Below are positions 15,718 through 43,813 of a stretch of 64,000 nucleotides of DNA, in pieces. Made by a program: the position numbers and the translations under genes. The notes under the pieces are model-generated. The model was not told the DNA's origin and did not search any database. It saw only the letters and a list, made by a program, of their open reading frames with translations. This DNA comes from Isurus oxyrinchus. Taxonomy: Eukaryota. Where the stretch lies: the NCBI GenBank assembly GCA_026770705.1, contig JANJGN010000557.1, forward strand, positions 310,001 to 374,000. The letters run 5' to 3'. Numbering within the stretch: the first letter of the stretch is position 1; each line of letters begins with the position of its first letter.

Positions 15718-15749
<32 letters not shown>

Positions 15750-17923: not shown

Positions 17924-17960
<37 letters not shown>

Positions 17961-20900: not shown

Positions 20901-23900
20901 GGATAGGTTCTCTCTTGTTGGAGATGATCACTGCCTGGTACTTGTGTGGCATGAATTTTACCTGTCATTTCTCAGCCCAAGCTGAGTGTTGTTTAGCTCT
21001 TGCTACATGTGAGGTCATGCACTTTGGTAGGAAGAATAGAGGTTTAGACTATATTCTAAATGGGGAGAGAATTCAGAAATCTGGAGTGCAAAGGGACTTG
21101 GGAGTCCTAGTCCAGGATTCTCTTAAGGTTAACTTGCAGGTTGAGTCGGTAGTTAGGAAGGCAAATGCAATGTTGGCATTTATTTCGAGAGGACTAGAAT
21201 ATAAAAGCAGGGATCTGCTGCTGAGGCTTTATAAGGCTCTAGTCAGACCACATTTAGAATATTGTGAGCAATTTTGGGCCCCGTATCTCAGGAAGGATGT
21301 GCTTGCCCTGGAGAGGGTCCAGAGGAGGTTCACGGGAACGATCCCAGGAATGAAAGGCTTAACATATGAGGAGTGTTTGAGGACTCTGGGTCTATACTCG
21401 ATGGAGTTTAGAAGGATGAGGGAAGATCTGATTGAAACTTACAGAATACAGAAAGGCCTGGATAGAGTGGACATGGGGAAGATGTTTTCATTAGTAGGAG
21501 AGACTAGGACCCGAGGGCACAGCCTCAGAGTAAAGGGAAGACCTTTTAGAACAGAGATGAGGAGAAACTTTTTTAGCCAGAGCGTGGTGAATCTGTGGAA
21601 TTCATTGCCACAGAAGGCTGTGGAGGCCAGGTCATTGAGTGTATTTAAGACCGAGATAGATAGGTTCTTGATTGGTAGGGGATCAAAGGTTACGGGGAGA
21701 AGGTGGGAGAATGGGGTTGAGAAACTTATCAGCCATGATTGAATGGCAGAGCAGACTCAATGGGCCGAATGGCCTAATTTCTACTCCTTTGTCTTATGGT
21801 CTTATGTGGAAATGTAAACTGTCACGCTGTAATTACAGCCTTCCACCAGAGGAGACACTGTCGGGCTAGAAGAAAAGAAAATGTCTTTCACATCATCAGG
21901 ATGTTCACGGGGATTTGACAGTGGAGGAATTGCTTTAGAATAATGGGGTATTGAGTGATAAACCTACAATTCTCTGTGCAGGGGGCTGCTCGTCCAATAC
22001 AGGGTCTTGTTCAGCTGATGTCGTCAGTGTTTCAGAGCAGAATCTGGAGCAACACTCCAGTGCAGCACAGGGAGAACAGACAACTCACACATGTCTGTGT
22101 GTGTGTGAGCAAGCACACGTGTGATTCTGTATGTATGCTTCTGTGTGTGAGCATGCAGGTGTACACACCTGTGCACATGTGGGATTGCANNNNNNNNNNN
22201 NNNNNNNNNNNNNNNNNNNNNNNNNNNNNNNNNNNNNNNNNNNNNNNNNNNNNNNNNNNNNNNNNNNNNNNNNNNNNNNNNNNNNNNNNNNNNNNNNNNN
22301 NNNNNNNNNNNNNNNNNNNNNNNNNNNNNNNNNNNNNNNNNNNNNNNNNNNNNNNNNNNNGAGAGTGTTATTGCAGTTTGTGTTAACTCACGTTCCACAG
22401 TGATGGTTATGAACCCCTCCACTGCTCCATGTTCATTCTCTGCCACACACTGATAGTCTCCAGTGTCCCTGGATGTAACGTGAGGAATCACCAACCACAG
22501 CTCATTGTTGGAACTTGTTCTGTTCATTGGGACATTAAGATGTCGCCACGTCAGGTTAGAAGCTGGGAAGCTCTCGACAGAGCAGATTATCACTGCAGAA
22601 TTCCCCTCAATTATATTGATTAATGAAGCGTTAATCATATCAAGAGAATTAATTGAGAGATTCTGTGGTGCATCTAAAAACAAATATAGATCAGTTAACT
22701 TACATTGACTGTTAAGCATTTGAGAGACACTGAGAATGTGAAAGGTGTGATATCAATGGCGATTCCATTACCACAAAGCACATTATCGAGGCAGTCACTA
22801 CAGTCCTGTACTAAGGGAGTGCTGAACATTTGGAGGGTCAGTACTGAGGGAGTACTGCACTGTCCGAAGATCAGTAATGAGGGAGTGCTGCACTGTCAGA
22901 GGGTCAGTTCTGAGGGAGTGCTGCACTGTCAGAGGGTCAGTACTGAGGGAGTACTGCACTGTCCGAGGGTCAGTACTGAGAGAGTGCTGCACTGTCAGAG
23001 GGTCAGTACTGAGGGAGTGCTGCACTGTCAGAGGGTCAGTACTGAGGGAGTGCTGCACTGTCAGAGGGTCAGTAATGTGGGAGTGCTGCACTGTTGGAGG
23101 GTCAGTACTGAGGGAGTACTGCACTGTCGGAGGGTCAGTTCTATGAGAGTGCTGCATTGTCATGGGGTCATTACTGAGGTTATGCTGCAGTGTCAGAGTT
23201 GAATTTCTATCAGTTAAAGACTACTGACTTGTTATTAAGCACAATGCAGTTGCTGTGTACGATGTAGGCCTTTCAAGATAATGTAGAATGAAGGATGTCC
23301 ATACTTACATTGCACAGTTAGTATGAGGGTCCGCTCCGATGAAACAGATGGATATCTCACTCTGCAGCTGAGAGTGTGTCCGTGGTGTTTGAGTGATGGG
23401 ATCAGGGTCAGAACAGAAGTATAGGTCAGAGTGACACCATGCTGAGTTACAGTGTTTGAGACTGATCCAGGTACGTCAGTGGGAGTGTCCCAGGTTAAGA
23501 CAGGTGCTGCTGTTCCATTGCACGTTGTGTTGAAGGTGCATCTTACATCCACACGCTTTCCTGCAATAATTTCAGCAGGAAATATCGTGGGTTTATCTGT
23601 GAAATCTAACAGACAGAGAATGGATCCTTTTAGAGAAATATAACATGAAGCATCAGTTCAAATAGAAGTCACAGTCCCACAAGAGAAAGCACTTTTACAA
23701 GGATGATATCAGATCTGAGAGGTTACAATGATCAGGAAATATTTTTAAACAGGATTAGGGAGATTGATGAGAGTGGATAACCTGATAACATTGATGGACA
23801 CAGTCAATACATTTAATCATTGATATTAAAGTGAGTATTAAAGGTTGCTTTAGGACTGAACTGGAAGCTATCACCAGGTTATTGAGAATCAGACAGTGTG

Positions 23901-26900
23901 TTATAATAAGCTGTGTTTTGTGTTAATACGTAAACGTCACAGTTTGTGTTATTTCCCATTGAGTGTTGAATGTGAATTGTTGAGTAATTATAACACAGCA
24001 CTTACCAGAAATGTGAAGCCGGGTTACAGGATAGTAGTTGTATCTATTACTTCGGTCAAATTCTATTCTGAAAAAATAAGGTCCTGCATCTTCCCGTCTG
24101 ATGTTGTTTATAATCAGGGAACAGTCGCCATCTTTCAGGTCTCCAGACAGCCGGGTCCGTTGGCGGAACCGTGGTAACTCGTGACTGTGATCCTTGGAGT
24201 GAAAGGCTATGGGAGATCCAGGAATCTGATTCTCGTTATTAAACCAGACTCCGACTCGTGGCTGGTTTTCCAAATGTGATGGATAACTGTAATGACATGG
24301 AATCTGTACACACGAACCTTCCTGCGCTGTCACCTCTCGTGGAGTGTCACCTTTCCACTCTTGTGACAGTCCAACTGGGGAGAGAAATATCAATATTTAA
24401 CTCTGGATGGTTTGTAGATCCACTGGATTCGATATCCACTCCCTCCATCACTGGGGCACAGTGCTGCAGTGTGGACCATCTACAGGACACACAGGGATCT
24501 CCCCAAGGTTTCACATTGGATGGAAGAGAATCCTGGACACAGGAGTGGACAAGTTCATTCTACATTGGCTCATGGTCCTCAGGACCCTGTTTAGCTTTTT
24601 TCAAATTATTCGTTAATGGCATGTGCCCAGCATTTATTACCCATCCCATACCCATCAGAGGCATTTAAGAGTCAACCACATTGCTGTGGGTTTGGAGTGA
24701 CATGTAGGCCAGACTGGGTAAGGGTGGCAGATTTCCTTCCCTATAGGTGATCAGTGAACCAGGCTTTTTAATTTCATTCATCTGCCGTGATGGGATTCAC
24801 ACCCAGGGCCCCAGAGCATCACCCTGGGCCTCTGGAATACTAGCCCAGTGACAATACCTCTCTGCTACCGCTTCCCCTTAGTGAAGCCAGTCTTCCACCC
24901 AACACAGTGTCTACAAGACACACCATTGAGATCCATTCAGTGCTGATTTACAAGACAGGACAATGGATTAGGAGCCCTCAGAACTCCCCCCATTATCACC
25001 GTCATAAATCACTAATTAGCCTAACATTCCTGTCTGCTCTTCAATGCAGCTGATTGGCTAATCTGATTCAATCTGATTGGTGTTCATTCCCTCTTCAATG
25101 TTTAAGGAATCACCAATCACTCGGCCTCTAGTTATTCTCTTCACAGAATATTAGGCTATAAGGTGGATATTGTGAATTATTTTATCTTTCTGAACTGGTG
25201 CAGTAAAGTTTATTTTTGTTTGTTTAAAAGCCATGGAATCTTGTAGCTTTATTCTCTTCGCAAGCATCTTAAATCTCAAACCTCATCTACTTGAAACAAA
25301 ACATTATTGGTTCCTAACTGTAAATTATCCCAAAAAATTGGGTGCCTGTTCCTCCATCAGCAACTCTTCAGAATCCTGCTGAAGTCACGGATATTTCAGA
25401 AGGACAGGGAACAAGAGGTTTCTGGTATCAGCGTTTTGTGTTGGGGCCCAGTTCAGTTTGAACAAATAAACAACACCATCTTTGAAAGTCATGAACCCAC
25501 CACAGCGGCACCTCCGACACATGCAGAGCTCAGGCGAGAGGCGCTTTGTTAGTGTGTTTCACAGTGTCTGCTGGAGTAGGGTCAGTGCTGAGAGGGTCTG
25601 CTCAAGGATCATAACAACCTGCACTTGCACCTTCCAAGTAATAAGATTTTGTAAATGTATTCATTCATGGGATGTGGGCGTCGCTGCCAAGGCCAGCATT
25701 TGCTGCTCATCCCTAATGTCCCTCGAATGGAGGGGATTGCTCGGACATTTCAGAGGACTGTTGAAGAGTCAGACAAGTTCCCATCAGTCTGGAGTCACAT
25801 GTAGGCCAGACCAGATATAGACGGCAGATTTCTTTCCCTAAAGGCCATTAGTGAACCAGATGGGTGTGTATGACAATCAGTGATAGTTTCATGGTCTCCA
25901 TTACTGAGACTGACTCCCATTAGTGTAAACAGAGTGAACAGTTTTCCATTTATCCCACCTTTCCCGTTCTCTCCGGTATTTTACACACTATTGCTCGATA
26001 ATTTGATTTTGCCAAGGACCCCTTGGAAAATCATGGACCCCAGTTAGACAACCAATGGAATAAGAAATCTCTTTGGATTCTCACTGCCAAAGGAATCTCT
26101 TTAGATCCTCATTGTCTGAGGAATCTCTTTGGATCCTCACTGCCAAAGGAATCTCTTTGGATCCTCATTGTCTAAGGGATTATTTCTGATCCAAACCCCA
26201 TATTGTTGTATTGTTGATTCCGATGCAGCATTGTAGACTGACTTGTCCCCAAGCTCAGCACTGACCCTACTCCAGCAGACACTGTGAAACACACTAACAA
26301 AGCGCCTCTAGCCTGAGCTCTGCATGTGTCGGAGGTGCCGCAGTGGTGGGTTCATGACTTTCAAAGATGGTGTTGTATATTTGTTCAAACTGAACTGGGC
26401 CCCACATGAAACGCTGATACCAGAAACCTCTTGTTCCCTGTCCTTCTGAAACATCTATGATTCAGCAGGATTCTGAAGATTTGCTAATAAGGGTCTTAAA
26501 TTGTCTGATTGTTGAATGATACAACACAGGAGGAGCTCATTTGACTCATCGTGCTTGTGCTGACTCTTTCCCAATTCCTCACCAGCAACTTTCACACATT
26601 CCTGCAAATTTCCCTTCAAGTATTTATCCAGTTCCCCTTCTGAAAGTTCCTGTTGAATCTGCTTCCACCGCCCTTTCAGGCAGTGAGTCAATGGTCTCTC
26701 TCTGAGCTGCAAAGTGCTCAGATTCTGTGAAATTTAAACTCTGCAGCAGGTCAGAGACAATCATGATAACTCAGAATATTTGACAGTTTTACACACGGAC
26801 AGCTTTACCTTCCTTCTCTCTTTCAGTTATCTTGCTCCCTTATTGAAGTATCTAGCATGGTGAGAATGGACAGGAAGTGTGACACTGAACAGCCTGTCTA

Positions 26901-27389
26901 TTCTAGGAGCTGCTGTGTTGTCTTCATGGACAATTTTGAATAAAGGCTGCAAAGGACACAAATTTCAGGCCATTGATATCGGAGACCTCAGATTAGGATA
27001 GGCTTCATACCCCAGTTTTTATCCCTGCCTCTCTACTCAACCCGTCAATCCCCATCGCTCACTGACCGAAGTCCGACAGCACCTGGATTCTGCTCCAGCT
27101 GCTACAAAGCTGTCTAACTCTGTAACCACCTCCAGACTCTACAACCATCCAAGACCTCTGCTCTCCTCCAATTCTGCTGTCTTACAAGGAGTCAGTGTAT
27201 ATAAGTGAGCACAGGGCTGTTCGGTGATTGGGACTTGGTGTGAATTTGTACACTGAGTCACTGCTGAATCGGTTCCCAATCACAGATCAATAATAATGCT
27301 CTTTTACAAAGACTATTAACCATAAATCTGTCCAAGCTGACGATAATACCTTGGAGAAGCGACAAGACAAAGTAAGATTTCCCGATCAT
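1..27389 (-). CDS. Gene A: multi-exon Siglec-like type I membrane lectin (leader - V-set - C2 - up to 18 Ig repeats - TM - cytoplasmic); 3' end outside window; span given to the most proximal leader ATG
   Basis: Frame-compatible exons with GT/AG boundaries. V domain has Siglec hallmarks ([18 protein letters not shown] with the essential Arg). Split junction codons rebuild the Siglec-type VQY/VEY/VEH-AP linkers. Confidence 0.88.
345..835 (+). repeat. 33-bp minisatellite (cagtgcagcactccctcagtactgaccctccga)
   Basis: About 13 direct copies; explains the repetitive ORFs here. Confidence 0.95.
1051..1132 (-). CDS. Gene A cytoplasmic exon 1 ((K)[27 protein letters not shown])
   Basis: Acceptor tattgcag; phase 2 matches the TM exon; donor CAG|gtacag; conserved in gene B at 49968-50049. 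Confidence 0.7.
1450..1772 (+). repeat. Two-copy ~180-bp diverged tandem duplication
   Basis: aagggaaacaatcaccgactt(c/a)aggaaagaacattgaagcaaatgtttat occurs at ~1541 and ~1723. Confidence 0.7.
1804..1900 (-). CDS. Gene A transmembrane exon ([32 protein letters not shown]), no charged residue in the hydrophobic span
   Basis: Acceptor tttttacag, donor gtaagt, 97 nt phase 1-2; ~25-residue hydrophobic run followed by basic residues. Confidence 0.85.
2718..2999 (-). CDS. Gene A Ig repeat exon 18 (membrane-proximal)
   Basis: 282 nt, phase 1-1, ttag/gtgagt; [13 protein letters not shown]...DTGDYLC Ig motif. Confidence 0.85.
3761..4042 (-). CDS. Gene A Ig repeat exon 17 (extra Cys, NRTCSIN)
   Basis: 282 nt, phase 1-1, intact splice sites and frame. 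Confidence 0.8.
4745..5026 (-). CDS. Gene A Ig repeat exon 16
   Basis: 282 nt, phase 1-1, intact. Confidence 0.82.
5636..5917 (-). CDS. Gene A Ig repeat exon 15
   Basis: 282 nt, phase 1-1, intact. Confidence 0.82.
7041..7322 (-). CDS. Gene A Ig repeat exon 14
   Basis: 282 nt, phase 1-1, intact. Confidence 0.82.
8051..8332 (-). CDS. Gene A Ig repeat exon 13
   Basis: 282 nt, phase 1-1, intact. Confidence 0.82.
9088..9369 (-). CDS. Gene A Ig repeat exon 12
   Basis: 282 nt, phase 1-1, intact. Confidence 0.82.
10307..10588 (-). CDS. Gene A Ig repeat exon 11
   Basis: 282 nt, phase 1-1, intact. Confidence 0.82.
11365..11646 (-). CDS. Gene A Ig repeat exon 10
   Basis: 282 nt, phase 1-1, intact. 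Confidence 0.82.
12372..12653 (-). pseudogene. Gene A Ig repeat exon 9 with premature stop (GGA>TGA at 12406-12408, AENEH*)
   Basis: Splice sites intact; in-frame TGA where all other copies have GGA. Confidence 0.8.
13453..13734 (-). CDS. Gene A Ig repeat exon 8
   Basis: 282 nt, phase 1-1, intact. Confidence 0.82.
14489..14770 (-). CDS. Gene A Ig repeat exon 7
   Basis: 282 nt, phase 1-1, intact. Confidence 0.82.
15787..16068 (-). CDS. Gene A Ig repeat exon 6
   Basis: 282 nt, phase 1-1, intact. Confidence 0.82.
16742..17023 (-). CDS. Gene A Ig repeat exon 5
   Basis: 282 nt, phase 1-1, intact. Confidence 0.82.
18015..18296 (-). CDS. Gene A Ig repeat exon 4
   Basis: 282 nt, phase 1-1, intact ([16 protein letters not shown]...). 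Confidence 0.82.
18791..19072 (-). CDS. Gene A Ig repeat exon 3
   Basis: 282 nt, phase 1-1, intact, donor gtgaga. Confidence 0.8.
19290..19460 (+). mobile_element. Short CR1-type LINE 3' end
   Basis: Matches the 3' tail of the 21011-21805 element; ends in gtcttata-like repeats. Confidence 0.7.
20239..20520 (-). CDS. Gene A Ig repeat exon 2
   Basis: 282 nt, phase 1-1, intact. Confidence 0.82.
21011..21805 (+). mobile_element. 5'-truncated CR1-type LINE in an Ig-array intron
   Basis: Open RT C-terminal frame (RDLGVLV...LVRPHLEYC...WNSLP) and gtcttatg tail; absent from sister introns. Confidence 0.9.
22392..22673 (-). CDS. Gene A Ig repeat exon 1 (Ig domain 3 of the protein)
   Basis: 282 nt, phase 1-1, intact. 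Confidence 0.85.
22810..23170 (-). repeat. 33-bp minisatellite, reverse orientation
   Basis: About 10 copies of gagggtcagtactgagggagtgctgcactgtca. Confidence 0.92.
23309..23605 (-). CDS. Gene A C2-set exon ([39 protein letters not shown]...SCRVRYP...LTVQ)
   Basis: 297 nt phase 1-1; acceptor tctgttag, donor gtaagt; Siglec domain-2 pattern with an extra Cys for the V-C2 disulfide. Confidence 0.9.
24006..24374 (-). CDS. Gene A V-set sialic-acid-binding exon
   Basis: 369 nt phase 1-1; acceptor ctccccag, donor gtaagt; [23 protein letters not shown] motifs. Confidence 0.92.
25365..26479. repeat. Inverted repeat, ~225-bp arms (25365-25592 / 26254-26479)
   Basis: Arms are reverse complements with few mismatches; spacer ~660 bp. 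Confidence 0.9.
26064..26175 (+). repeat. 28-bp tandem repeat x4 (alternating 56-bp dimer)
   Basis: ggaatctctttggatcctca followed by ctgccaaa or ttgtct(g/a)a. Confidence 0.85.
27350..27389 (-). CDS. Leader (signal peptide) segment, unit 1: [13 protein letters not shown]
   Basis: 40 nt ATG..CAAG|gt, phase 1, joins the V exon as ...LLQVGLSQEW; exon acceptor ctctttcag at 27432. Confidence 0.8.
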
Positions 27390-27839
27390 TGTCCACTCCC
27401 AGATATTTCATCAGTTTCTCACTTTCAAGCTCTGAAAGAGAAAGGAGTTAATGAGACCTCACCTCTTGTCCGACAGCTCTCAAGAGATCAGAACTGCTCG
27501 TAGACAATGTCTTCACAGACTAATTTGATTCTCTGTGGGATGATAGGTGCTCTACAGAGAGTTACATGGCTTAAAGAAAGAAAAACAAGGAAGGACTTGC
27601 ATTCCTATAGCACCTTTCACCACCTCAGGACATCCCAAATCTCATGTCTCTGCACTTCCCTCATCCCTTGAGCTAGAAAGATGTTCTGTACAACAGACTT
27701 GAACCTCACACCCAGATCTCAATAATCAGTAGAAATCTTTCAAAAGCATCAATCATTGGAATCTGTCTTTAGAAAGTCACAACATCAACAAAGGACAGTG
27801 TTGGTCGTGGAAGTGAATTCCAATCATTCCGTTACTTAC

Positions 27840-27990
27840 CCAGGACCTGTCCGACTGCTCGCCTGGGGAGGAACTGCCCACACGCTCTGCTTGGGCTGAA
27901 TGACCTCTTCCTGTGCTGGTCCCTCTGTGTATTTAATTAGAAAGAGCTGATGTGCCACTCTGAGTCAAAATGAGGAAGCTGGAACAAAGT
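27840..27990 (-). promoter_or_regulatory. Putative promoter and non-coding exon 1 of unit 1 (repeated in every unit): PU.1/Ets-like AAAATGAGGAAG box, TATA-like TTAAATA, exon ending at a gtaagt donor
   Basis: Same module precedes the leader of plus-strand gene C (56140-56290); AAAATGAGGAAGT or AAAAAGAGGAAGT in nine units and AAAATGAGGAAGC in unit 1. Confidence 0.55.
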
Positions 27991-29096
27991 GAGAGAACAG
28001 CACTTTGCTGTGCACTGTCAGTAAACCCTGTGTCTGTATAAGAATATAAGAACAGAACAAGTAGGATCAGCTGGACACCCTGACATTTTCATTCCTTATA
28101 TTCCATCCACTCATTTTTTTATTCACCCACTGAAACTATTAATCTCCCTCTGCAGCCTCTTTGTGTCCTCCTCACAACTTACTTTCCTGCCCAGCTTAAA
28201 TATTTAGTACCTATCTGCACCATACAGTCAGAAAATCTGCCTACAGTCCAGTCAGTCCCTTCATCCAAGTCACTAATGTAGATTGTGAATAGTTGAGGCT
28301 TTGAAATATCTGTCCAATTATTCCCACACTCACCTCTGCTCTCTTCTCCAAAGCCCTACAAAATGTCCCCTTCAAGTATTTATCCAGTTCCCCTTCTGAA
28401 AGTTCCTGTTGAATCTGCTTCCACCGGCCTTTCAGGCAGTGAGTCAATGGTCTCTCTCTGAGCTGCAAAGTGCTCAGATTCTGTGAAATTTAAACTCTGC
28501 AGCAGGTCAGAGACACTCATGAGAACTCAGAATATTTGACAGTTGTACACACAGACAGCTTTGCCTCCCTTCTCTCTTTCAGTTATCTTGCTCCCTTATT
28601 GAAGTATCTAGCATGGTGAGAATGGACAGGAAGTGTTATGCTGAACAGCCTGTCTATTCTAGGAGCTGCTGTGTGCCTTCATGGGAAATTCTGACTAAAA
28701 TCAGCAACAGACACTAATTTCAGGTTATAGCTATCATAGTCCTAGCATCGGGATAGACTTCATCCCCTAGTTTACATCCCTGATTTCCTGCCCAACCCAT
28801 CATCCCTCTCGCTCACTGGCCAACGCCCGACATCTGATCTCGCCACTACAATCCTGCCCAACTCTGTAACCTCCTCCAGCCCCTACAACCCTCCAAGACC
28901 TCAGCTCTCCTCCAATTCTGCTGTCAGACAGGGAGTCAGTGTACATCAGTGAGCAAAGGGGTGATGGGTGAATGGGACTTGGTATGAGTTTGTACAATGG
29001 CTCACTGCTGAATCAGTTCCCAATCACAGATCAATAAGAATGATCTTTTACAAAGACTATTAACCATAAAACTGTCTGAGCTGACGATGATATTAC

Positions 29097-29136
29097 CTTG
29101 GAGAAGTGACAGCAAGATGTAAGATTTCCCGAACAT
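29097..29136 (-). CDS. Leader, unit 2: MFGKSYILLSLLQ
   Basis: 40 nt, ATG and GT donor intact. Confidence 0.65.
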
Positions 29137-30858
29137 TGTCCACTCCCAGATATTCCATCAGCTTCTTACTTTCAAGGTCTGAAAGGGAAAGGTTTTAATG
29201 AGACCTCACATCTTGTCCGACAGCTGTCGAAAGATCAGAACTGCTTTTAAACAATGTCTTCACTGACTAATTTGATTCTCTGTGCGATGATAGGTGCTCT
29301 ACATAGAGTTACAAGGCTTTAAGAAAACAAAACAAGGAAGGACTTGCATTTCTATAGCACCTTTCACCACCTCAGGACATCCCAAAGCTCATGTCTCTGC
29401 ACTTCCCTCATCCCTTGAGCTAGAAAGATGTTCTGTACAACAGACTTGAGCCTCACACCCAGATCTCAATAATCAGTGGAAATCTTTCAAAGGCATCAAT
29501 CATTGGAATCTGTCTTTATAAAGTCACAACATCAACTAAAGCCCGGTGCTGGTCATTGAAGTGAATTCCAATCGTTCCGTTACTTACCCAGGACCTGTCC
29601 GACTGCTCGCCTGGGGAGGAACATGCCCACACACTCTGCTAAGGCTGAATGACCTCTTCCTGTGCTGATCCATCTGTGTATTTAATTAGAAAGAGCTGAT
29701 ATTTCACTGTGAGACAAAATGAGGAAGTTGGAACAAAGTGAGAGAACAGCACTTTGCTGTGCACTGTCAGTAAACCCTGTGTCTGTATAAGAATATAAGA
29801 ACAGAACAAATAGGATCAGCTGGACACCCTGACATTTTCATTCCTTATATTCCATCCGCTCATTTTTTTATCCACTCACTGAAACTATTTATCTGCCTCT
29901 CCAGCCTCTTTGTGCCCTCCTCACAGCTTGCTTTCCTGCACAGCTTATATATTTCGTACCTATCTGCACCAGACAGAAAATCTGTCTACAGTACAGTCAG
30001 TCTCGTCATCCAAGTCGCCATTGTAGATTGTGAATAGTTGAGGCTTTGAAAGATCTGTCCAATTATTCCCACTCTCCCATCTGCTCTCTCCACCACAGCC
30101 CAACAAAATGTCCCCTTCAACTATTTACACAGTTCCATTTCTGAAAGTTCCTGTTGAATCTGTTTCCACCGCCCTTTCAGGCAGTGAGTCAATGGTCTCT
30201 CTCTGAACTCCAAAGTGCTAAGATTCTGTGAAATTTAAACTCTGCAGCAGATCAGAGACAATCATGAGAACTCAGAATATTTGAGACATTTACACAGAGA
30301 GAGCTTAGCCTTCCTTTTCTCTTTCAGTTATTTTGCTCCCTTATTGAAGTATCTAGCATGGTGATACTGGACAGGAAGCGTGATACTGAACAGCCTGTCT
30401 ATTCTAGGAGCTGCTGTTTTGTCTTCATGGGATATTTTGAATAAAGGCAGCAAAGGACACAAATTTCAGACCATTGCTATCGGAGACCTTGCAGCAGAAT
30501 AGACTACATTCCCCAGTATTTATCCCTGCTTCTCTACTCAACCCATCAATCCCCATTGCTCAATGTCCAATGTCCGACATCACCTGAACTTTAAGATTCT
30601 GCTCTCGCTGCTACTATCCTGCCTAAGTATGTAACCTCCTCCAGCCTCTACAACCATCCAGGATCTCTGCTCTCCTCCAATTCTGCAGTCAGACAGGGAG
30701 TCAGTGTATACCAGTGAGCACAGGGCTGATGGGTGAATGAGACTTGGTTTGAGTTTGTACATTGGCTCACTGCTGAATCAGTTCCCAATCACAGATCAAT
30801 GAGAATGATCTTTTACAAAGACTATTAACCATAAATCTGTTCAAGCTGATGATATTAC

Positions 30859-30898
30859 CTTGGAGAAGCGACAGGACGAAGTAAGATTTCCCGATCAT
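30859..30898 (-). CDS. Leader, unit 3: [13 protein letters not shown]
   Basis: 40 nt, ATG and GT donor intact. Confidence 0.65.
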
Positions 30899-32619
30899 TG
30901 TCCACTCCCAGATATTTCATCAGTTTCTCACTCTCAAGCTCTGAAAGAAAATGGATTTAATGAGACCTCACCTCTTGTCCGACAGCTCTCGAGAGATCAG
31001 AACTGCTTTTAGACAATGTCTTCATAGACTAATTTGGTTCTCTGCGGGATGATAGGTGCTCTGCAGTGAGCTACAAGGCTTTAAGAAAGAAAAGCAAGGA
31101 AGGACTTGCATTTCAATAGTGCTCTTCACCATCTAGGACATCCCAAATCTCATGTCTCTGCACTTGTCTCATCCCTTGAGCTAGAAAGATGTTCTGTACA
31201 ACAGACTTGAACCTCACACCCAGATTTCAATAATCAGTAGAAATCTTTCAAAGGCATCAATCATTGGAATCTGTCTTTATAAAGTCACAACATCAACAAA
31301 GGACGGTGTTGGTGGTGGAAGTGAATTCCAATCGTTCCGTTACTTACCCAGGACCTGTCCGACTGCTCGCCTGGGGAGGAACTGCCCACACGCTTTGCTT
31401 GGGCTGAATGACCTCTTCCTGTGCTGATCTATCTGTGTATTTAATTAGAAAGGGCTGATGTGTCACTGTGAGACAAAAAGAGGAAGTTGGAACAAAGTGA
31501 GAGAACAGCACTTTGCTGTGCACTGTCAGCAAACCCTGTGTCTGTATAAGAATATAAGAACAGAACAAGTAGGATCAGCTGGACACCCTGACATTTCCCC
31601 CCTTATATGCCAACCATTCATTTTTTGTCCACCCACTAAAACTATTTGTCTCCCTCTACTGCCTCTTTGTGCCCTCCTCACAACTTGCTTTCCTGCCCAG
31701 CTTACATATTTCCTACCTATCTTCACCACACAGTCAGAAAATCTGCCTACAGTACAATCAGTCTCTTCATCCAAGTCACTAATGTGGATGGTGAATAGTT
31801 GAGGCTTTGAAAGATCTGTCCAATTATTCCCACTCTCACCTCTACTCTCTCCTCCACAACCCTGCAAAATGTCCCCTTCAAGTATTTATCCAGTTCCCCT
31901 TCTGAAAGTTCCTGTTGAATCTGCTTCCACCGCCCTTTCAGGCAGTGAGTCAATGGTCTCTCTCTGAGCTGCAAAGTGCTCAGATTCTGTGAAATTTAAA
32001 CTCTGCAGCAGGTCAGAGACAATTATGAGAACTCAGAATATTTGACAGTTTTACACACAGATAGCTTTACCTCCCTTCTCTCTTTCAGTTATCTTGCTCC
32101 CTTATTGAAGTATCTAGCAAGGTGAGAATGGACAGGAAGTGTGACACTGAACAGCCTGTCTATTCGAGGAGCTACTGTGTTGTCTTCATGGGCAATTTCG
32201 AATAAAGGCAGCAACGGGCACATATTTCAGGCCATTGATATCGGAGACCTCACATTAGGACGGACTTCATCCCCCATTATTTATCCCTGCTTCTCTACTC
32301 GACCCTTCAATCCCCATTGCTCACTGACAAAGGTCCGACAGCTACTGAATTTTAAGATTCTGCTCTAGCTTCTACAAACCTGTCTAACTCTGTAACCTCC
32401 ACCAGACTCTACAACCATCCAAGACCTCCGCTCTCCTCCAATTCTGCTGTCGTACAAGAAGTCCATGTATATAAGTGAGCACAGGGCCGTTCGGTGATTG
32501 GGACTTGGTGTGAGTTTGTAGACCGTGTCACTGCTGAATCGGTTCCCAATCACAGATCAATAAGAATGCTCTTTTACAAAGACTATTACTCATAAATCTG
32601 TCAGAGCTGAAGATATTAT

Positions 32620-32659
32620 CTTGGAGAAGTGACAGGAGGAAGTAAGATTTCCCAATCAT
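32620..32659 (-). pseudogene. Leader, unit 4: MIGKSYFLLSLLQ with donor GT>AT
   Basis: CCAAG|ataata instead of gtaata. Confidence 0.65.
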
Positions 32660-34367
32660 TGTCCACTCCCAGATATTTCATCAGGTTCTCACTCTCAAGC
32701 TCTGAAAGAGAAATGAGTTAATGAGACCTCACCTCTTGTCCGACAGCACTCGAGAGATCAGAACTGCTTTTAGACAATGTCTTCACAGACTAATTTGATT
32801 CTCTGTGGGATGATAGGTGCTCTACAGAGAGTTATATGGCTTAAAGAAAGAAAAACAAGGAAGGACTTGCATTCCTATAGCACCTTTCACCACCTCAGGA
32901 CATCCCAAATCTCATGTCTCTGCACTTCCCTCATCTATTGAGCTAGAAAGATGTTCTGTACAACAGACTTGAGCCTCACACCCAGATCTCAATAATCAGT
33001 AGAAATCTTTCAAAGGCATCAATCATTGGAATCTGTCCTTATAAAGTCACAACATCAACAAAGGACGGTGTTGGTCGTGGAAGTGAATTCCAATCGTTCC
33101 GTTACTTACCCAGGACCTGTCCGACTGCTCGCCTGGGGAGGAACTGCCCACACGCTCTGCTTGGGCTGAATGACCTCTTCCTGTGCTGCTCCCTTTGTGT
33201 GTTTATTTAGAAAGAGCTGATGTGCCACTCTGAGACAAAATGAGGAAGTTGGAACAAAGTGACAGAACAGCACTTTGCTGTGCACTGTCAGTAAACCCTG
33301 TGTCTGTATAAGAATATAAGAACAGAACAAATAGAATCAGCTGGACACCCTGACATTTTCATGCCTTATATTCCATCCACTCATTTTTTTATCCACTCAC
33401 TGAAACTATTTATCTCCCTCTGCAGCCTCTTTGTGTCCTCCTCACAACTTGCTTTCCTGCCCAGCTTATATATTTCCTACCTATCTGCACCATACAGTCA
33501 GAAAATCTGCCTACAGTACAGTCAGTCCCTTCATCCAAGTCACTAATGTAGATTGTGAATAGTTGAGGCTTTGAAAGATCTGTCCAATTATTCCCACACT
33601 CACCTCTGCTCTCTCCTCCATAGCCCTGCAAAATGTCCCCTTCAAGTATTTATCCAGTTCCCCTTCTGAAAGTTCCTGTTGAATCTGCTTCCACCGCCCT
33701 TTCAGGCAGTGAGTCAATGGTCTCTCTCTGAGCTGCAAAGTGCTCAGATTCTGTGAAATTTAAACTCTGCAGCAGATCAGAGACACTCATGATAACTCAG
33801 AATATTTGACAGTTGTACACACAGACAGCTTTGCCTCCCTTCTCTCTTTCAGTTATCTTGCCCCTTATCAAAGTTTCTAGCATGGTGAAAATGGACAGGA
33901 GGTGTGACACTGAACAGCCTGTCTATTCTAGGAGCTGCTGTGTTGTCTTCATGGGAAATTCTGACTAAAATCAGCAACAGACACTAATTTCAGCTTATAG
34001 CTATCATAGTCTTAGCATCGGGATAGACTTCATCCCCCAGTTTTCATCCCTGATTTCCTGCTCAAACTATCACTCCGCCTCGCTCACTGGCCAACGCCCG
34101 ACTTCTGATCTCGCCGCTACAATCCTGCCCAACTCTGTAACCTTCTCCAGCCCCTACAACCCTCCAAGACCTCTGCTTTCCTCCAATTCTGCTGTCAGAC
34201 AGGGAGTCAGTGTACATCAGTGAGCACAGGGGTGATGGGTGAATGGGATATGGTGTGAGTTTGTACACTGGCTCACTGCTGAATCAGTTCCCTATCACAA
34301 ATCTTTAAGAATGACCTTTTACAAAGACTATTAACCATAAAACTGTCTGAGCTGACGATGATATTAC

Positions 34368-34407
34368 CTTGGAGAAGTGACAGGAAGAAGTAAGATTTTA
34401 CGATCAT
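34368..34407 (-). CDS. Leader, unit 5: MIVKSYFFLSLLQ
   Basis: 40 nt, ATG and GT donor intact. Confidence 0.65.
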
Positions 34408-37400
34408 TGTCCACTCCCAGCTATTACATCAGCTTCTCACTCTCAAGGTCTGAAAGAGAAAGGATTTAATGAGACCTCACGTCTTGTCCGACAGCGGTCG
34501 AGAGATCAGAACTGCTTTTAAATAATGTCTTCACCGACTAATTTGATTCTATGTGCGATGATAGGTGCTCTGCAGAGAGTAACAAGGCTTTAAGAAAGAA
34601 AAACAAGGAAGGACTTTCATTTCTATAGCACCTTTCACCACCTCAGGACATCCCAAAGCTCATGTCTCTGCACTTCCCTCATCCCTTGAGCTAGAAAGAT
34701 GTTCTGTACAACAGACTTGAGCCTCACACCCAAATCTCAATAATCAGTGGAAATCTTTCAAAGGCATCAATCATTGGAATCTGTCTTTATAAAGTCACAA
34801 CATCAACAAAGGACGGTGTTTGTGGTGGAAGTGAATTTCAATCGTTCCGTTAATTACCCAGGACCTGTCCGACTGCTCGCCTGGGGAGGAACTGCCCACA
34901 TGCTCTGTTTGGGCTGAATGACCTCTTCCTGTGTTGATCCATCTGTGTATTTAATTAGAAAGAGCTGATATTTCACTGTGAGTCAAAATGAGGAAGTTGG
35001 AACAAAGTGGGAGAACAGCACTTAGCTGTGCACTGTCAGCAAACCCTGTGTCTGTATAAGAATATAAGAACAGAAAAAGTAGGATCAGCTGGACACCCTG
35101 ACATTTTCTCTCTTTATATGCCAACCACTCATTTTTTTATCCACTCACTGAAACTATTTATTTGCCTCTCCAGCCTCTTTGTGCCCTCCTCACAACTTGC
35201 TTTCCTGCCCAGCTTAAATATTTTGTACCTATCTGCACCATACAGTCAGAAAATCTGTCTACAGTACAGTCAGTCCCTTCATCCAAGTCACTAATGTAGA
35301 TTGTGAATAGTTGAGTCTTTGAAAGATCTGTCCAATTATTCCCACTCTCACCTCTGCTCTCTCCTCCACAGCCCTACAAAATGTCCCCTTCAACTATTTA
35401 TCGAGTTCCCCTTCTGAAAGTTCCTGTTGAATCTGCTTCCACCGGCCTTTCAAGCAGTGAGTCAATGGTCTCTCTCTGAGCTGCAAAGTGCTCAGATTCT
35501 GTGAAATTTAAACTCTGCAGCAGATCAGAAACAAACATGATAACTCAGAATATTTGAGACATTTACACAGAGAGAGCTTTACCTTCCTTTTCTCTTTCAG
35601 TTATCTTGCTCCCTTATTGAAGTTTCTAGCATGGTGAGAATGGACAGGAAGTGTGACACTGAACAGCCTGTCTATTCGAGGAGCTGCTGTGTTGTCTTCA
35701 TGGGAAATTTTGAATAAAGGCAGCAAAGGATACAAATTTCAGACCATTGCTATCGGAGACCTCGCAACAGGATAGACTTCATACCCCAGTATTTCTCCCT
35801 GCTTCTCTACTCAACCCATCAATCCCCATTGCTCACTGACCAATGTCAGACAGCACCTGAATTTTAAGATTGTGCTCTCGCTGCTACAATCTTGCCTAAC
35901 TCTGTAACCTCCTCCAGCATCTACAACCCTCCAAGATCTCTGCTCTGCTCCAATTCTGCTATCAGACAGGGAGTCAGTGTATACCAGTGAGCACAGTGGT
36001 GATGGGTGAATGGGACTTGGTGTGAATGGGACAGCGGGCGAGAGATCAGATCTGCTTTTAAATAATGGCTTCACCGACTAATTTGATTCTATGTGCGATG
36101 ATAGGTGCTCTGCAGAGAGTAACAAGGCTTTAAGAAAGAAAAACAAGGAAGGACTTGCATTTCTATAGCACCTTTCACCACCTCAGTACATCCCAAAGCT
36201 CATGTCTCTGCACTTCCCTCATCCCTTGAGCTAGAAAGATGTTCTGTACAACAGACTTGAGCCTCACACCCAGATCTCAATAATCAGTAGAAATCTTTCA
36301 AAGGCATCAATCATTGGAATCTGTCTTTATAAAGTCACAACATCAACAAAGGACGGTGCTGGTCATTGAAGTGAATTCCAATTGTTCCGTTACTTACCCA
36401 GGACCTGTCCGACTGCTCGCCTGGGGAGGAACATGCCCACACGCTCTGCTAAGGCTGAATGACCTCTTCCTGTGCTGATCCATCTGTGTATTTAATTAGA
36501 AAGAGCTGATATTTCACTGTGAGACAAAATGAGGAAGTTGGAACAAAGTGAGAGAACAGCACTTTGCTGTGCACTGTCAGTAAACCCTGTGTCTGTATAA
36601 GAATATAAGAACAGAACAAATAGGATCAGCTGGACAATCTGACATTTTCCCTCCTTATATGCCAACCACTCATTTTTTTATCCACTCACTGAAACTATTT
36701 ATCTGCCTCTCCAGCCTCTTTGTGCCCTCCTCACAACTTGCTTTCCTGCACAGCTTATATATTTCGTACCTATCTGCACCAGACAGAAAATCTGTCTACA
36801 GAACAGTCAGTCTCTTCATCCAAGTCGCCATTGTAGATTGTGAATAGTTGAGGCTTTGAAAGATCTGTCCAATTATTCCCACTCTCACATCTGCTCTCTC
36901 CACCACAGCCCAACAAAATGTCCCCTTCAACTATTTACCCAGTTCCACTTCTGAAAGTTCCTGTTGAATCTGTTTCCACCGCCCTTTCAGGCAGTGAGTC
37001 AATGGTCTCTCTCTGAACTCCAAAGTGCTAAGATTCTGTGAAATTTAAACTCTGTAGCAGATCAGAGACAATCATGAGAACTCAGAATATTTGAGACATT
37101 TACACAGAGAGAGCTTAACCTTCCTTTTCTCTTTCAGTTATCTTGCTCCCTTATTGAAGTTGCTAGCATGGTGATACTGGACAGGAAGCGTGATACTGAA
37201 CAGCCTGTCTATTCTAGGAGCTGCTGTTTTGTCTTCATGGGATATTTTGAATAAAGGCAGCAAAGGACACAAATTTCAGACCATTGCTATCGGAGACCTT
37301 GCAGCAGAATAGACTACATCCCCCAGTATTTATCCCTGCTTCTCTACTCAACCCATCAATCCCCATTGCTCAATGACCAATGTCCGACATCACCTGAATT

Positions 37401-37668
37401 TTAAGATTCTGCTCTCGCTGCTACTATCCTGCCTATGTATGTAACCTCCTCCAGCCTCTACAACCATCCAGGATCTCTGCTCTCCTCCAATTCTGCAGTC
37501 AGACAGGGAGTCAGTGTATACCAGTGAGCACAGGGGTGATGGGTGAATGAGACTTGGTGTGAGTTTGTACAATGGCTCACTGCTGAATCAGTTCCCAATC
37601 ACAGATCAATGAGAATGCTCTTTTACAAAGACTATTAACCATAAATCTGTTCAAGCTGATGATATTAC

Positions 37669-37708
37669 CTTGGAGAAGCGACAGGACGAAGTAAGATTTC
37701 CCGATCAT
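37669..37708 (-). CDS. Leader, unit 7: [13 protein letters not shown]
   Basis: 40 nt, intact; unit 6 lacks this exon (deletion near 36030). Confidence 0.65.
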
Positions 37709-42904: not shown

Positions 42905-43813
42905 TGTCCACTCGCAGATGTTCCATTAGCTTCTCACTCTCAAGCTGTGAAAGAGAAAGGAGTTAATGAGACCTCACCTCTTGTCTGACAGCTGTCGAGA
43001 GATCTGAACTTCTTTTAGACAATGTCATCACAGACTAATTTGATACTCTGCGGGATGATAGGTGCTCTGCAGAGAGTTACTAGGCTTTAAGAAAGAAAAA
43101 CAATGAAGGACTTGCATTTCTATAGCACCTTTCACCTGCTCAGGACATCCCAAATCTCATGTCTCTGCACTTGTCTCATCCCTTGAGCTAGAAAGATGTT
43201 CTGTACAACAGACTTGAGCCCCACACCCAGATCTCAATAATCAGTAGAAATCTTTCAAAGGCATCAATCATTGGAATCTGTCTTTATAAAGTCACAACAT
43301 CAACAAAGGACGGTGTTGATTGTGGAAGTGAATTCCAATCGTTCCGTTACTTACCCAGGACCTGTCCGACTGCTCGCCTGGGGAGGAACTGCCCACACGT
43401 TCTGTTTGGGCTGAATGACCTCTTCCTGTGCTGATCTATCTGTGTATTTAATTAGAAAGAGCTGATGTGTCACTGTGAGACAAAATGAGGAAGTTGGAAC
43501 AAAGTGAGAGAACAGCACTTTGCTGTGCACTGTCAGTAAACCCTGTGTCTGTATAAGAATATAAGAACAGAACAAGTAGGATCAGCTGGACACCCTGGCA
43601 TTTTCATTCCTTATATTCCATCCACTCATTTTTTTATCCACTCACTGAAACTATTTATCTCGCTCTACAGCCTCTTTGTGTCCTCCTCACAACTTGCTTT
43701 CCTGCTCAGTTTATATATTTCCTACCTATCTTAACCACACAGTCAGAAAATCTGCCTACAGTACTGTCAGTCCCTTCATCCAAGTCACTAATGTAGATTG
43801 TGAATAGTTGAGG

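Follow-up and report, generated by a model that had tools for sequence, protein, structure and literature searches.

Ten-fold tandem amplification of a 5' module with putative promoter, first exon and signal-peptide exon in front of one shark Siglec-like gene

The variable exons of the clustered protocadherin and UGT1A loci carry the code for most of the mature protein. As they lack a 3' splice acceptor, only the transcribed cap-proximal one is joined to the constant exons of the gene. A different arrangement is seen in Snurf-Snrpn, whose U exons sit in duplicated units. These alternative upstream exons are joined to a shared downstream exon of a single gene (PMC10825728). Closest to the locus described here is the hydra gene of Drosophila melanogaster, with nine tandem alternative first exons, each containing a coding sequence of nine codons (Chen et al., 2007; PMC1904467). 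At least four of these nine exons are used, as revealed by 5' RACE, and hydra itself is a young, fly-specific gene expressed in testis (PMC1904467).

In this work we analyzed a window of 64,000 nucleotides from Isurus oxyrinchus (contig JANJGN010000557.1, positions 310,001 to 374,000). A repeat search and a blastn comparison of the window with one of its units revealed ten head-to-tail units on the minus strand at 26612-43813. A preliminary description had placed a ten-copy tandem repeat of a gene's 5' end at 26600-43813 and had taken it for an amplified 5' module of the gene, not an anonymous satellite; both proposals were borne out. The units are 1.54-1.76 kb long, with start-to-start spacings of 1756, 1745, 1761, 1764, 1748, 1537, 1761, 1744 and 1688, and the array has sharp boundaries on both sides (26612 and 43813). 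Pairwise identity between units ranges from 88.4 to 97.8% with a typical difference of about 10%, and thus the array is not a string of identical copies; the amplification is genuine and not very young. It should be noted that tandem repeats are often misassembled and that the copy number given here is that of the assembly. Nevertheless, the ten units are distinct, 2-12% apart, with unit-specific indels and without N gaps, and contigs from independent sequencing runs match them at 95-98%, so that a mis-expanded assembly repeat is a very improbable explanation. The units are listed below in window coordinates; exon 1 is putative and exon 2 predicted throughout.

26612..43813, minus strand: ten-fold array of 5' cassettes, from U1 (proximal) to U10 (distal), defined by repeat search, blastn and pairwise identity
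26612..28367, minus strand: U1, exon-1 donor GTAAGT after 27840, leader donor GTATTA
28054-28023 and 27874-27841, minus strand: invariant blocks of U1, of 32 and 34 nt, respectively
27431-27350, minus strand: exon 2 of U1, ATG at 27389
28368..30112, minus strand: U2, exon 1 ending at 29588, exon 2 at 29178-29097, ATG at 29136, donor GTAATA, leader MFGKSYILLSLLQ
30113..31873, minus strand: U3, exon 1 ending at 31348, exon 2 at 30940-30859, ATG at 30898, donor GTAATA (97.8% identical to U7)
31874..33637, minus strand: U4, exon 1 ending at 33110, exon 2 at 32701-32620, ATG at 32659, donor ATAATA, leader MIGKSYFLLSLLQ
33638..35385, minus strand: U5, exon 1 ending at 34858, its donor weakened to GTAATT
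34449-34368, minus strand: exon 2 of U5, ATG at 34407, donor GTAATA, leader MIVKSYFFLSLLQ
35386..36922, minus strand: U6, with both the promoter block and the exon-1 block (34 nt, 36432-36399) preserved
36923..38683, minus strand: U7, exon 1 ending at 38157, exon 2 at 37750-37669, ATG at 37708, donor GTAATA
38684..40427, minus strand: U8, exon 1 ending at 39900 with its final base changed from G to A, exon 2 at 39493-39412, ATG at 39451, donor GTATTA
40428..42115, minus strand: U9, exon 1 ending at 41637, exon 2 at 41236-41155, ATG at 41194, donor GTAATA, leader MVWKSYFLLSLLQ
42116..43813, minus strand: U10, the distal unit, which lacks ~69 nt at its start, exon 1 ending at 43355, donor GTAATA, leader MIGKSYFLLSFLQ
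about 42946-42865, minus strand: exon 2 of U10, ATG at 42904, acceptor AG displaced by 2 nt

Domain and homology searches, made exon by exon as was the reading of frame consequences, identified the gene body next to the array as follows.

24375..26611, minus strand: unrepeated rest of the leader-to-V intron
24006..24374, minus strand: the only V-set exon, in phase 1 on either side and matched by Pfam V-set and Ig_CD22, with the arginine motif YFFRIEF
23309..23605, minus strand: second Ig exon, C2-set_2 (Pfam)

Three features expected of a Siglec/CD33-related gene were found: a domain of the V-set type (Pfam on 24007-24372, minus strand: V-set, 4.1e-14; Ig_CD22, 4.4e-10), a predicted sialic-acid-binding arginine on the F strand in a motif shared with shark homologues, and a split signal peptide together with a C2-set domain. 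Its best relatives with a name are shark proteins annotated as "sialic acid-binding Ig-like lectin" and "CD33-like", and the Siglec-like family of sharks to which the gene belongs is very large. A stop lies in one of the gene's 18 repeated Ig exons, so that the whole gene might be decaying. The window also contains an inverted paralogue with one leader exon, which is frameshifted, and with two copies of the exon-1 block; its intron (57256-57476) is 94% identical to the 220-nt end of the leader-to-V intron (24375-24594). The latter intron also contains high-copy pieces of SINE-like character and an inverted repeat with arms at 25356-25592 and 26254-26488.

A six-frame search revealed nine leaders on the minus strand, each of 13 codons plus one nucleotide (40 nt), which begin at the ATGs listed above. 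The V exon opens at 24374 with two nucleotides that finish the codon begun by the last G of the leader (phase 1); a short separate exon thus begins the signal peptide, the start of the V exon completes it, and the C2-set exon comes next. As described earlier, all nine in-phase leaders keep the ATG and the exact length, and eight of nine keep a GT donor (GTAATA in six units, GTATTA in U1 and U8). The exception is U4, whose ATAATA reads as a dead donor, while U6 has no leader exon because a deletion of ~230 nt took the acceptor, the leader exon and the donor. All five peptide variants recorded previously were recovered, and U4 additionally has the canonical peptide.

The same canonical sequence, followed by a V domain, forms the N-terminus of NCBI Siglec/CD33-like models in seven shark species (Carcharodon, Cetorhinus, Scyliorhinus canicula, S. 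torazame, Mustelus, Stegostoma and Rhincodon), and by this homology the 40-nt leaders are genuine signal-peptide exons of the family. Ordinary shark CD33-type Siglecs (XP_041037177 of Carcharodon carcharias; XP_078389734 of Cetorhinus maximus) share the leader, the phase-1 join to the V-set domain and a second Ig domain; compared as protein models, they have one leader each. In Carcharodon isoform X2 and the catshark models the start is the upstream ATG of the leader exon, and hence the UTR of the leader exon belongs to these models. All nine leader-bearing units have a pyrimidine tract and an AG 42 nt upstream of the ATG, a predicted acceptor that is shifted by 2 nt in U10. The predicted exon 2 is therefore 82 nt long and composed of 42 nt of 5' UTR, including an out-of-frame upstream ATG, and the 40-nt leader. 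Complete start and splice signals were found in eight of the ten units; seven or eight look competent in sequence, and two (U4 and U6) appear to be without leader function.

The amplified module belongs to a single CD33-type Siglec-like gene of the shark, and we consider it somewhat better than an even chance that its copies are redundant modules of the hydra type in which only the promoter/exon-1 core is invariant. Each cassette would comprise (i) a TATA-like box and Ets/PU.1-type sites; (ii) a non-coding exon 1 of ~165 nt that ends at a consensus GTAAGT donor; (iii) an intron of ~410 nt; (iv) the 82-nt exon 2 with 42 nt of 5' UTR and the 40-nt signal-peptide start; and (v) a leader donor that would pair in phase 1 with the single V exon. 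Since the signal peptide is cleaved, every competent unit would yield the same mature receptor, and the array would consist of redundant alternative 5' modules and not form a diversifying cluster of variable exons. The earlier proposal that the mature protein would be unchanged is supported, as the exon provides only the first 13 residues of the cleaved signal peptide.

In hydra and in the shark alike the 5' end of one gene is tandemly amplified, so that upstream sequence and a very short coding sequence (9 codons in hydra, 13 in the shark) precede a common next exon; the shark array has ten head-to-tail units with nine in-phase leaders and eight GT donors. One hydra copy is likewise predicted to be dead, the copies fall into sequence groups with related neighbours, pointing to unequal crossing-over, and repeat elements accompany the units. 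The shark gene differs in that it is a vertebrate immune receptor whose short coding sequence is a conserved family signal peptide, and in that its predicted cassette apparently has two exons with an internal acceptor. The preliminary description knew of no such array for a Siglec; the type of array has a precedent in hydra.

With the protocadherins and UGT1A the locus shares a row of 5' exons, each presumably with its own promoter, before shared downstream exons. The contrast drawn earlier, namely that the mature protein is changed there and would be unchanged here, holds. The analogy is nevertheless weak: the shark copies are near-identical recent duplicates that encode a cleaved signal peptide only, and each leader exon has a strong predicted acceptor, and an extra 82 nt breaks the frame. 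Both hallmarks of that type, a changed mature protein and exons without an acceptor, are missing from the shark array as predicted from its sequence. The U exons of Snurf-Snrpn differ in being non-coding, oocyte-specific and involved in imprint establishment; they are not signal-peptide exons.

Conservation of the leaders had been taken as a sign of constraint, and this was not borne out. Nucleotide diversity is 0.10 in the leader and 0.093 on average in the unit, and the leaders show 21 differences from their consensus where the null gives 23 on average. What the leaders keep (ATG, length, open frame and eight of nine donors) is matched by 17-25% of 42-nt windows placed arbitrarily in the alignment. 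The leader thus changes as fast as the neighbouring intron, one of the outcomes that the preliminary description had named as speaking against its idea of an expression device. The 8 nonsynonymous and 7 synonymous events correspond to a dN/dS-like ratio of 0.36 (p = 0.06), which leaves room for weak constraint.

The intron-like rate of the leader suits an alternative in which a single unit works and the remaining nine are mere relics, inert, in a long first intron or upstream region, their invariant blocks being due to gene conversion or to chance variation in rate. Two units (U4 and U6) are dead, the mosaicism of the units in different regions points to conversion, and additional leader exons would be deleterious. 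The last point follows from the predicted structure: as each leader exon has its own predicted acceptor and a length not divisible by three (82 nt), including several in series would end translation early. On the redundant-module reading as well, transcripts that start upstream and take in a downstream leader exon would terminate prematurely, and productive mRNA would be expected where a leader donor joins the V acceptor directly, probably from the proximal unit or units, or where all other leader exons are skipped. We regard the alternative of one working unit as unlikely, although it is the most serious of the rivals, and the evidence that weighs against it comes from the putative promoter and exon 1.

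Two blocks do not vary at all among the ten units: one of 32 nt is TATA-like, and the other, of 34 nt, abuts the GTAAGT donor of the candidate non-coding exon (GTAAGT in nine units, GTAATT in U5). None of 20,000 shuffles of the whole unit matched these two runs; within the slow region alone the longest invariant run has P = 0.022, and two runs of 34 and 32 nt have P = 0.00025, which is hard to obtain by conversion alone. None of the ten units has lost either of the two CpGs within the invariant block, and immediately 3' of the exon-1 donor the sequence varies again. In addition, the block with its donor occurs 12 times in the window at no more than two mismatches, and two of these occurrences lie upstream of the inverted paralogue, where it is thus also kept.

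The sequence motifs attributed earlier to each unit, namely a PU.1-like box and a non-coding exon with a GT donor, and in most units a TATA-like box, were also found, the non-coding exon as a candidate. Ets/PU.1-type cores (GGAA on either strand) are present in all units, for example AACTTCCTC in nine and GTTCCTCCCC in ten, and there are two TATA-like boxes, TTATATTCTTATA in 10 of 10 units and TTTATAAAG in eight, degraded in U1 and U4. Because the ten copies share one ancestor, the shared motifs count as one observation and not ten. The promoter, the transcription start and the use of exon 1 are putative and are proposed from motifs and conservation. The core appears to be held either by promoter/splice selection or by conversion from functional copies; the blocks could stem from local gene conversion rather than selection. 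In the young pair U3/U7 the block region is 2.9% divergent, compared with 1.0-2.4% elsewhere, and the tree signal varies by region. A snoRNA or miRNA host array was also considered for the blocks and was rejected, as a permissive Rfam search yielded nothing beyond an lncRNA match at chance level and the fold of 27820-28070 had z = +0.84. The 32- and 34-nt blocks point to where the core promoter and first exon of the shark Siglec-like family may lie.

The same blocks bear on the more ambitious proposal that the array is an adaptive expression device, in which most units act as alternative promoters or jointly as an Ets-site enhancer cluster and output of the one unaltered receptor scales with copy number or depends on stochastic choice. 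Their invariance in ten units that are otherwise ~10% divergent, the retention of all start and splice signals in 8 of 10 units and the use of at least four of nine duplicated exons in hydra are in its favor. However, the leader shows no sign of constraint and its function has already gone in two units, and leader exons with acceptors break the frame downstream of one another, which would make distal promoters costly and not additive. Hydra-type arrays are, moreover, explained by unequal crossing-over with no need for adaptive dosage. On balance we find such a device rather improbable. We are equally doubtful that selection maintains all ten cassettes, or most of them, as live promoters, with the blocks as its footprint; the array would then be a dosage macrosatellite made from the gene's own 5' end. 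In that case a vertebrate immune receptor would set its expression level or per-cell promoter choice through first exons of variable copy number and identical product.

Should several redundant modules fire, the locus would be a vertebrate immune-gene case of expression tuned or buffered by the copy number of a tandem promoter and first exon, and a natural test bed for the splicing of repeated leader exons that each have an acceptor. Transcript-level data came from Logan contig sets (runs X1, X19, X20 and X7 over 23900-29899), in which the RNA or DNA nature of a run was guessed. Among the joints listed for this interval, all of them at dispersed repeats, none connected leader to V or exon 1 to exon 2. 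In X19 and X20 there are contigs that run unspliced across the V acceptor. In the RNA-like run X1 the summed contig depth was 467 and 268 over putative exon 1 and 43 over the intron proposed to follow it; the bin of the leader exon had 172, and the depth downstream was 18. This low-resolution profile is compatible with exon use, and only suggestive of it.

As to the origin of the array, pairwise identities and region-specific distance matrices revealed the related pairs U1~U4, U2~U5 and U3~U7 and the related neighbours U8~U9, and the matrices indicate block duplication and mosaicism among the units. Unequal crossing-over most likely built the array, including a duplication of a three-unit block that would account for the first three pairs, and gene conversion would later have made the units mosaic. 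Such an origin agrees with the related neighbours and blocks and with the repeats at the unit borders. Units derived from whole-gene duplicates by deletion were rejected, since V-exon remnants are absent from them, and recombination between transposable elements at the array ends is unsupported, as the two flanks have no mutual similarity. A reverse transcriptase-like open reading frame was seen by eye in the upstream part of the unit, but the Pfam search of it was empty and BLASTP against the LINE open reading frame of the window was not significant. Even if neutral, the array records the remodelling of both ends of the gene by unequal crossing-over (ten 5' cassettes and 18 Ig exons). The unit border itself is spanned by a dispersed element of ~100 nt with further copies at 1318-1422 and 59542-59612, and contig depth is high at 26500-26699, near this border element.

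We found ten tandem units on the minus strand at 26612–43813 by repeat finding, and a blastn comparison of one unit with the window gave ten consecutive matches of full or near-full length. The unit start-to-start spacings are 1756, 1745, 1761, 1764, 1748, 1537, 1761, 1744 and 1688 nt, and the array ends abruptly on both sides, at 26612 and 43813. Pairwise identity between units is 88.4–97.8%. Since the units are ten different sequences ~10% apart, an assembler cannot have produced the array by multiplying a single copy; it is also free of N runs, and an assembly artefact is extremely improbable. The tandem amplification of the 5′ cassette of a Siglec gene, as proposed in the preliminary description, is therefore real: it comprises ten diverged units (numbered from U1, nearest the V exon, to the distal U10), each of 5′ material only, with no V-exon remnant found within them.

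A six-frame search revealed nine leaders on the minus strand, each the 40-nt start of a signal-peptide coding sequence (13 codons plus 1 nt). They match exactly those listed previously, and the canonical MIGKSYFLLSLLQ is also present in U4 besides the listed variants. In U6 the whole leader exon is missing (deletion of ~230 nt). The V exon's first two bases complete the codon begun by the last G of the leader; thus the leaders would join the single V exon in phase 1, with the split codon completed from 24374 on, as had been claimed. Retention of the GT donor in eight of nine leaders was likewise confirmed, the exception being U4 (AT). The features are as follows (slashes mark exon borders):

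24374–24006, minus strand: V exon, with Pfam V-set and Ig_CD22 matches
23605–23309, minus strand: exon after the V exon, with a C2-set_2 match
Leader donors: AAG/GTAATA in six leaders, AAG/GTATTA in two (U1, U8), AAG/ATAATA in one (U4)

For homology searches the exons were queried separately. The V exon, queried alone, retrieved NCBI models of Carcharodon carcharias and Rhincodon typus, which open with MIGKSYFLLSLLQ(V/A)GL...EWK.. and have the leader continuous with the V domain. An exhaustive profile-free search gave 1545 relatives, and the same leader motif was revealed in 13 retrieved proteins, as the first residues in 12 and behind a short in-frame N-terminal extension in one. Those looked up are annotated as Siglec-8/-12/-13/-14-like, CD33-like or hemicentin-like and come from Carcharodon, Cetorhinus, Scyliorhinus canicula, S. 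torazame, Mustelus asterias and Stegostoma; Carcharodon CD33-like isoform X1 (retrieved protein P0153) is near this gene across the V domain and domain 2. By homology, the leader is thus a genuine signal-peptide exon. Carcharodon isoform X2 and the catshark models begin at an upstream ATG found in every leader-bearing unit, and those models therefore take in the 5′ UTR portion of the leader exon. All nine leader exons have this ATG at a distance of 22 nt from the main one (e.g., 27411–27409, minus strand); it is out of frame here, giving an overlapping uORF of ~30 codons. The catshark models read it in frame (MKYLEGTMIGKSY...), whereas isoform X2 starting from it uses another acceptor inside the V exon.

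Constraint on the leaders within the array, suggested earlier by their intact ATG, length and hydrophobic core, is not demonstrable. Nucleotide diversity is 0.10 in the 40 leader columns vs 0.093 unit-wide, and 60% of 40-nt windows show equal or greater conservation. All remaining 42-nt windows of the nine-unit alignment served as an empirical null: 64% of windows lack indels, 39% have the first three bases unchanged throughout the nine units, 73% retain the final two bases in eight or more, and 25% combine all three features; among those with an open-frame consensus, 17% also gain no stop. The features kept by the leaders thus occur in 17–25% of controls, and the leaders have 21 differences from consensus vs a null mean of 23. 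Substitution events number 8 nonsynonymous and 7 synonymous (expected 3.2:1; p = 0.06, without transition-bias correction), and retention of the "hydrophobic core" is largely as expected of first-position changes in NTN codons. In the comparison with unit introns that the preliminary description itself had proposed, the leader is no more constrained.

Diversity is uneven along the unit, 0.056 in a block of ~360 nt (620–260 nt upstream of the ATG) vs 0.10 in the rest. This slow block contains the two stretches that stay invariant for longest when all ten units are aligned:

27874–27841 in U1, minus strand: 34-nt run whose end lies one base short of the final base of candidate exon 1, the exon being followed by a consensus GTAAGT donor
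28054–28023 in U1, minus strand: 32-nt run including TTATATTCTTATA

Because only 56.6% of columns are invariant (79% in the slow region), such runs were reached in none of 20,000 whole-unit shuffles; within the slow region alone, P = 0.022 for the longest run and 0.00025 for two such runs. Two CpGs of the 34-nt block are kept in all ten units, while CpGs elsewhere have often decayed to TpG or CpA. At ≤2 mismatches, the window has 12 copies of this block with its donor (41 nt), ten of them in the array and two (55602–55642, 56250–56290) upstream of the inverted paralogue, a second Siglec-like gene on the plus strand. The 32-nt block occurs in the window only in the ten units, exact each time. 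An Rfam search with the invariant blocks gave no known RNA family, and the fold z-score (+0.84) does not point to an obviously structured RNA.

In gene orientation, each unit would contain a TATA-like box within the 32-nt block; ~165 nt with several Ets/PU.1-type cores (AACTTCCTC, CAGGAAGAG, GTTCCTCCCC); a donor CTGG/GTAAGT; ~410 nt including a second TATA-like TTTATAAAG and more GGAA cores; a pyrimidine tract, a CTCAT branch-like site and CAG/A; a putative 82-nt exon in which 42 nt of UTR, carrying the out-of-frame ATG, precede the 40-nt leader; and the leader donor. GTGAGG was rejected as a donor, being only 31 nt upstream of the acceptor, too near for an intron. Summed contig depth of sequencing run X1 is 314–976 in V-exon bins vs 10–20 in intron bins; thus X1 behaves like RNA. 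Its depth reaches 467 and 268 across putative exon 1, falls to 43 in the putative intron, rises to 172 in the bin of the leader exon and drops to 18 immediately after it. This pattern agrees with the cassette model, but we take the pattern only as a hint because the depths are sums over contigs from all units and paralogues. At 29300–29499, a low-complexity A/T-rich stretch in U2, X1 depth is ~20,000 vs 30–100 in runs X19 and X20; poly(A)-like contigs were probably drawn there spuriously.

The closest known case that we found is Drosophila hydra, in which exon 1 is present as nine tandem copies that each include upstream sequence and a 9-codon coding sequence; seven of them are followed by a DINE-1 element. 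The copies form similarity groups, and the authors invoke unequal crossing-over to explain them. Transcription starts in at least four, and length is polymorphic between lines (PMC1904467). Alternative upstream exons spliced into exon 2 are also described for the Snrpn U exons (PMC10825728). Given the hydra precedent the kind is already known, and the shark array appears to belong to it. No description of such an array was found in the shark Siglec literature. New here are the vertebrate immune receptor and the family-conserved signal peptide, together with a cassette that appears to have two exons and an internal acceptor, and the sharply invariant promoter/exon-1 blocks.

The predicted acceptor of the leader exon would have consequences for the reading frame. 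A second 82-nt leader exon after a first is open and exits in phase 2, so that the V exon reaches a stop after eight codons; a third copy gives an immediate stop. Downstream leader copies are thus potential poison exons for transcripts begun farther upstream, unlike protocadherin and UGT1A exons. This potential argues that productive mRNA would come from the proximal unit(s), or with all intervening leader exons skipped. A single live unit, the others being relics, is a rather unlikely explanation; we lean slightly toward redundant hydra-type 5′ modules, one or a few units giving most of the output. That the array is an adaptive multi-promoter or enhancer device seems to us quite improbable.

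Identities of U1 with U4 (94.5%), U2 with U5 (94.0%) and U3 with U7 (97.8%) show duplication of a three-unit block; U8 and U9 are related neighbours. Distance matrices differ among unit parts (Spearman 0.06–0.41), and the young pair U3/U7 differs by 2.9% in the conserved region vs 1.0–2.4% elsewhere, which argues that the units are mosaics shaped by gene conversion. The unit matches the inverted paralogue at ~92% from ~610 nt upstream of the ATG through the leader to 61 nt inside the intron, and more weakly (71%) in a stretch ~420–510 nt from the intron start; the 220 nt adjoining the V exon are 94% identical to the paralogue. This pattern identifies the unit as the ancestral promoter-to-intron segment. 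A dispersed element of ~100 nt spans the unit border. No similarity was found between the two array flanks, and thus a simple repeat-to-repeat crossover is not supported.

The leader exon of the inverted paralogue (56735–56773, plus strand) has 39 nt instead of 40, with a one-base deletion after MIGKS, and reads MIGKSTSSCHFSK. Its phase does not fit that of the paralogue's V exon (from 57477), reflecting either a pseudogene or a sequencing error. This paralogue has two exon-1/promoter block copies (55431–55663 and 56083–56311, plus strand), ~85% identical and 648 nt apart, with a 33-nt minisatellite between them (55715–55917), so the region was duplicated more than once in the family. The minisatellite occurs at at least five places, on both strands, near Siglec genes (also 330–840, 22808–23198, 48755–48945 and 61734–62099). 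The part of the leader-to-V intron outside the array contains an inverted repeat of 237 nt (25356–25592/26254–26488, 95% identical), close below the array's proximal end. The array-bearing gene contains 18 near-identical Ig exons at 2713–22692, minus strand (87–100% protein identity, spacing 0.8–2.2 kb), one of which (12364–12669) contains a stop codon.
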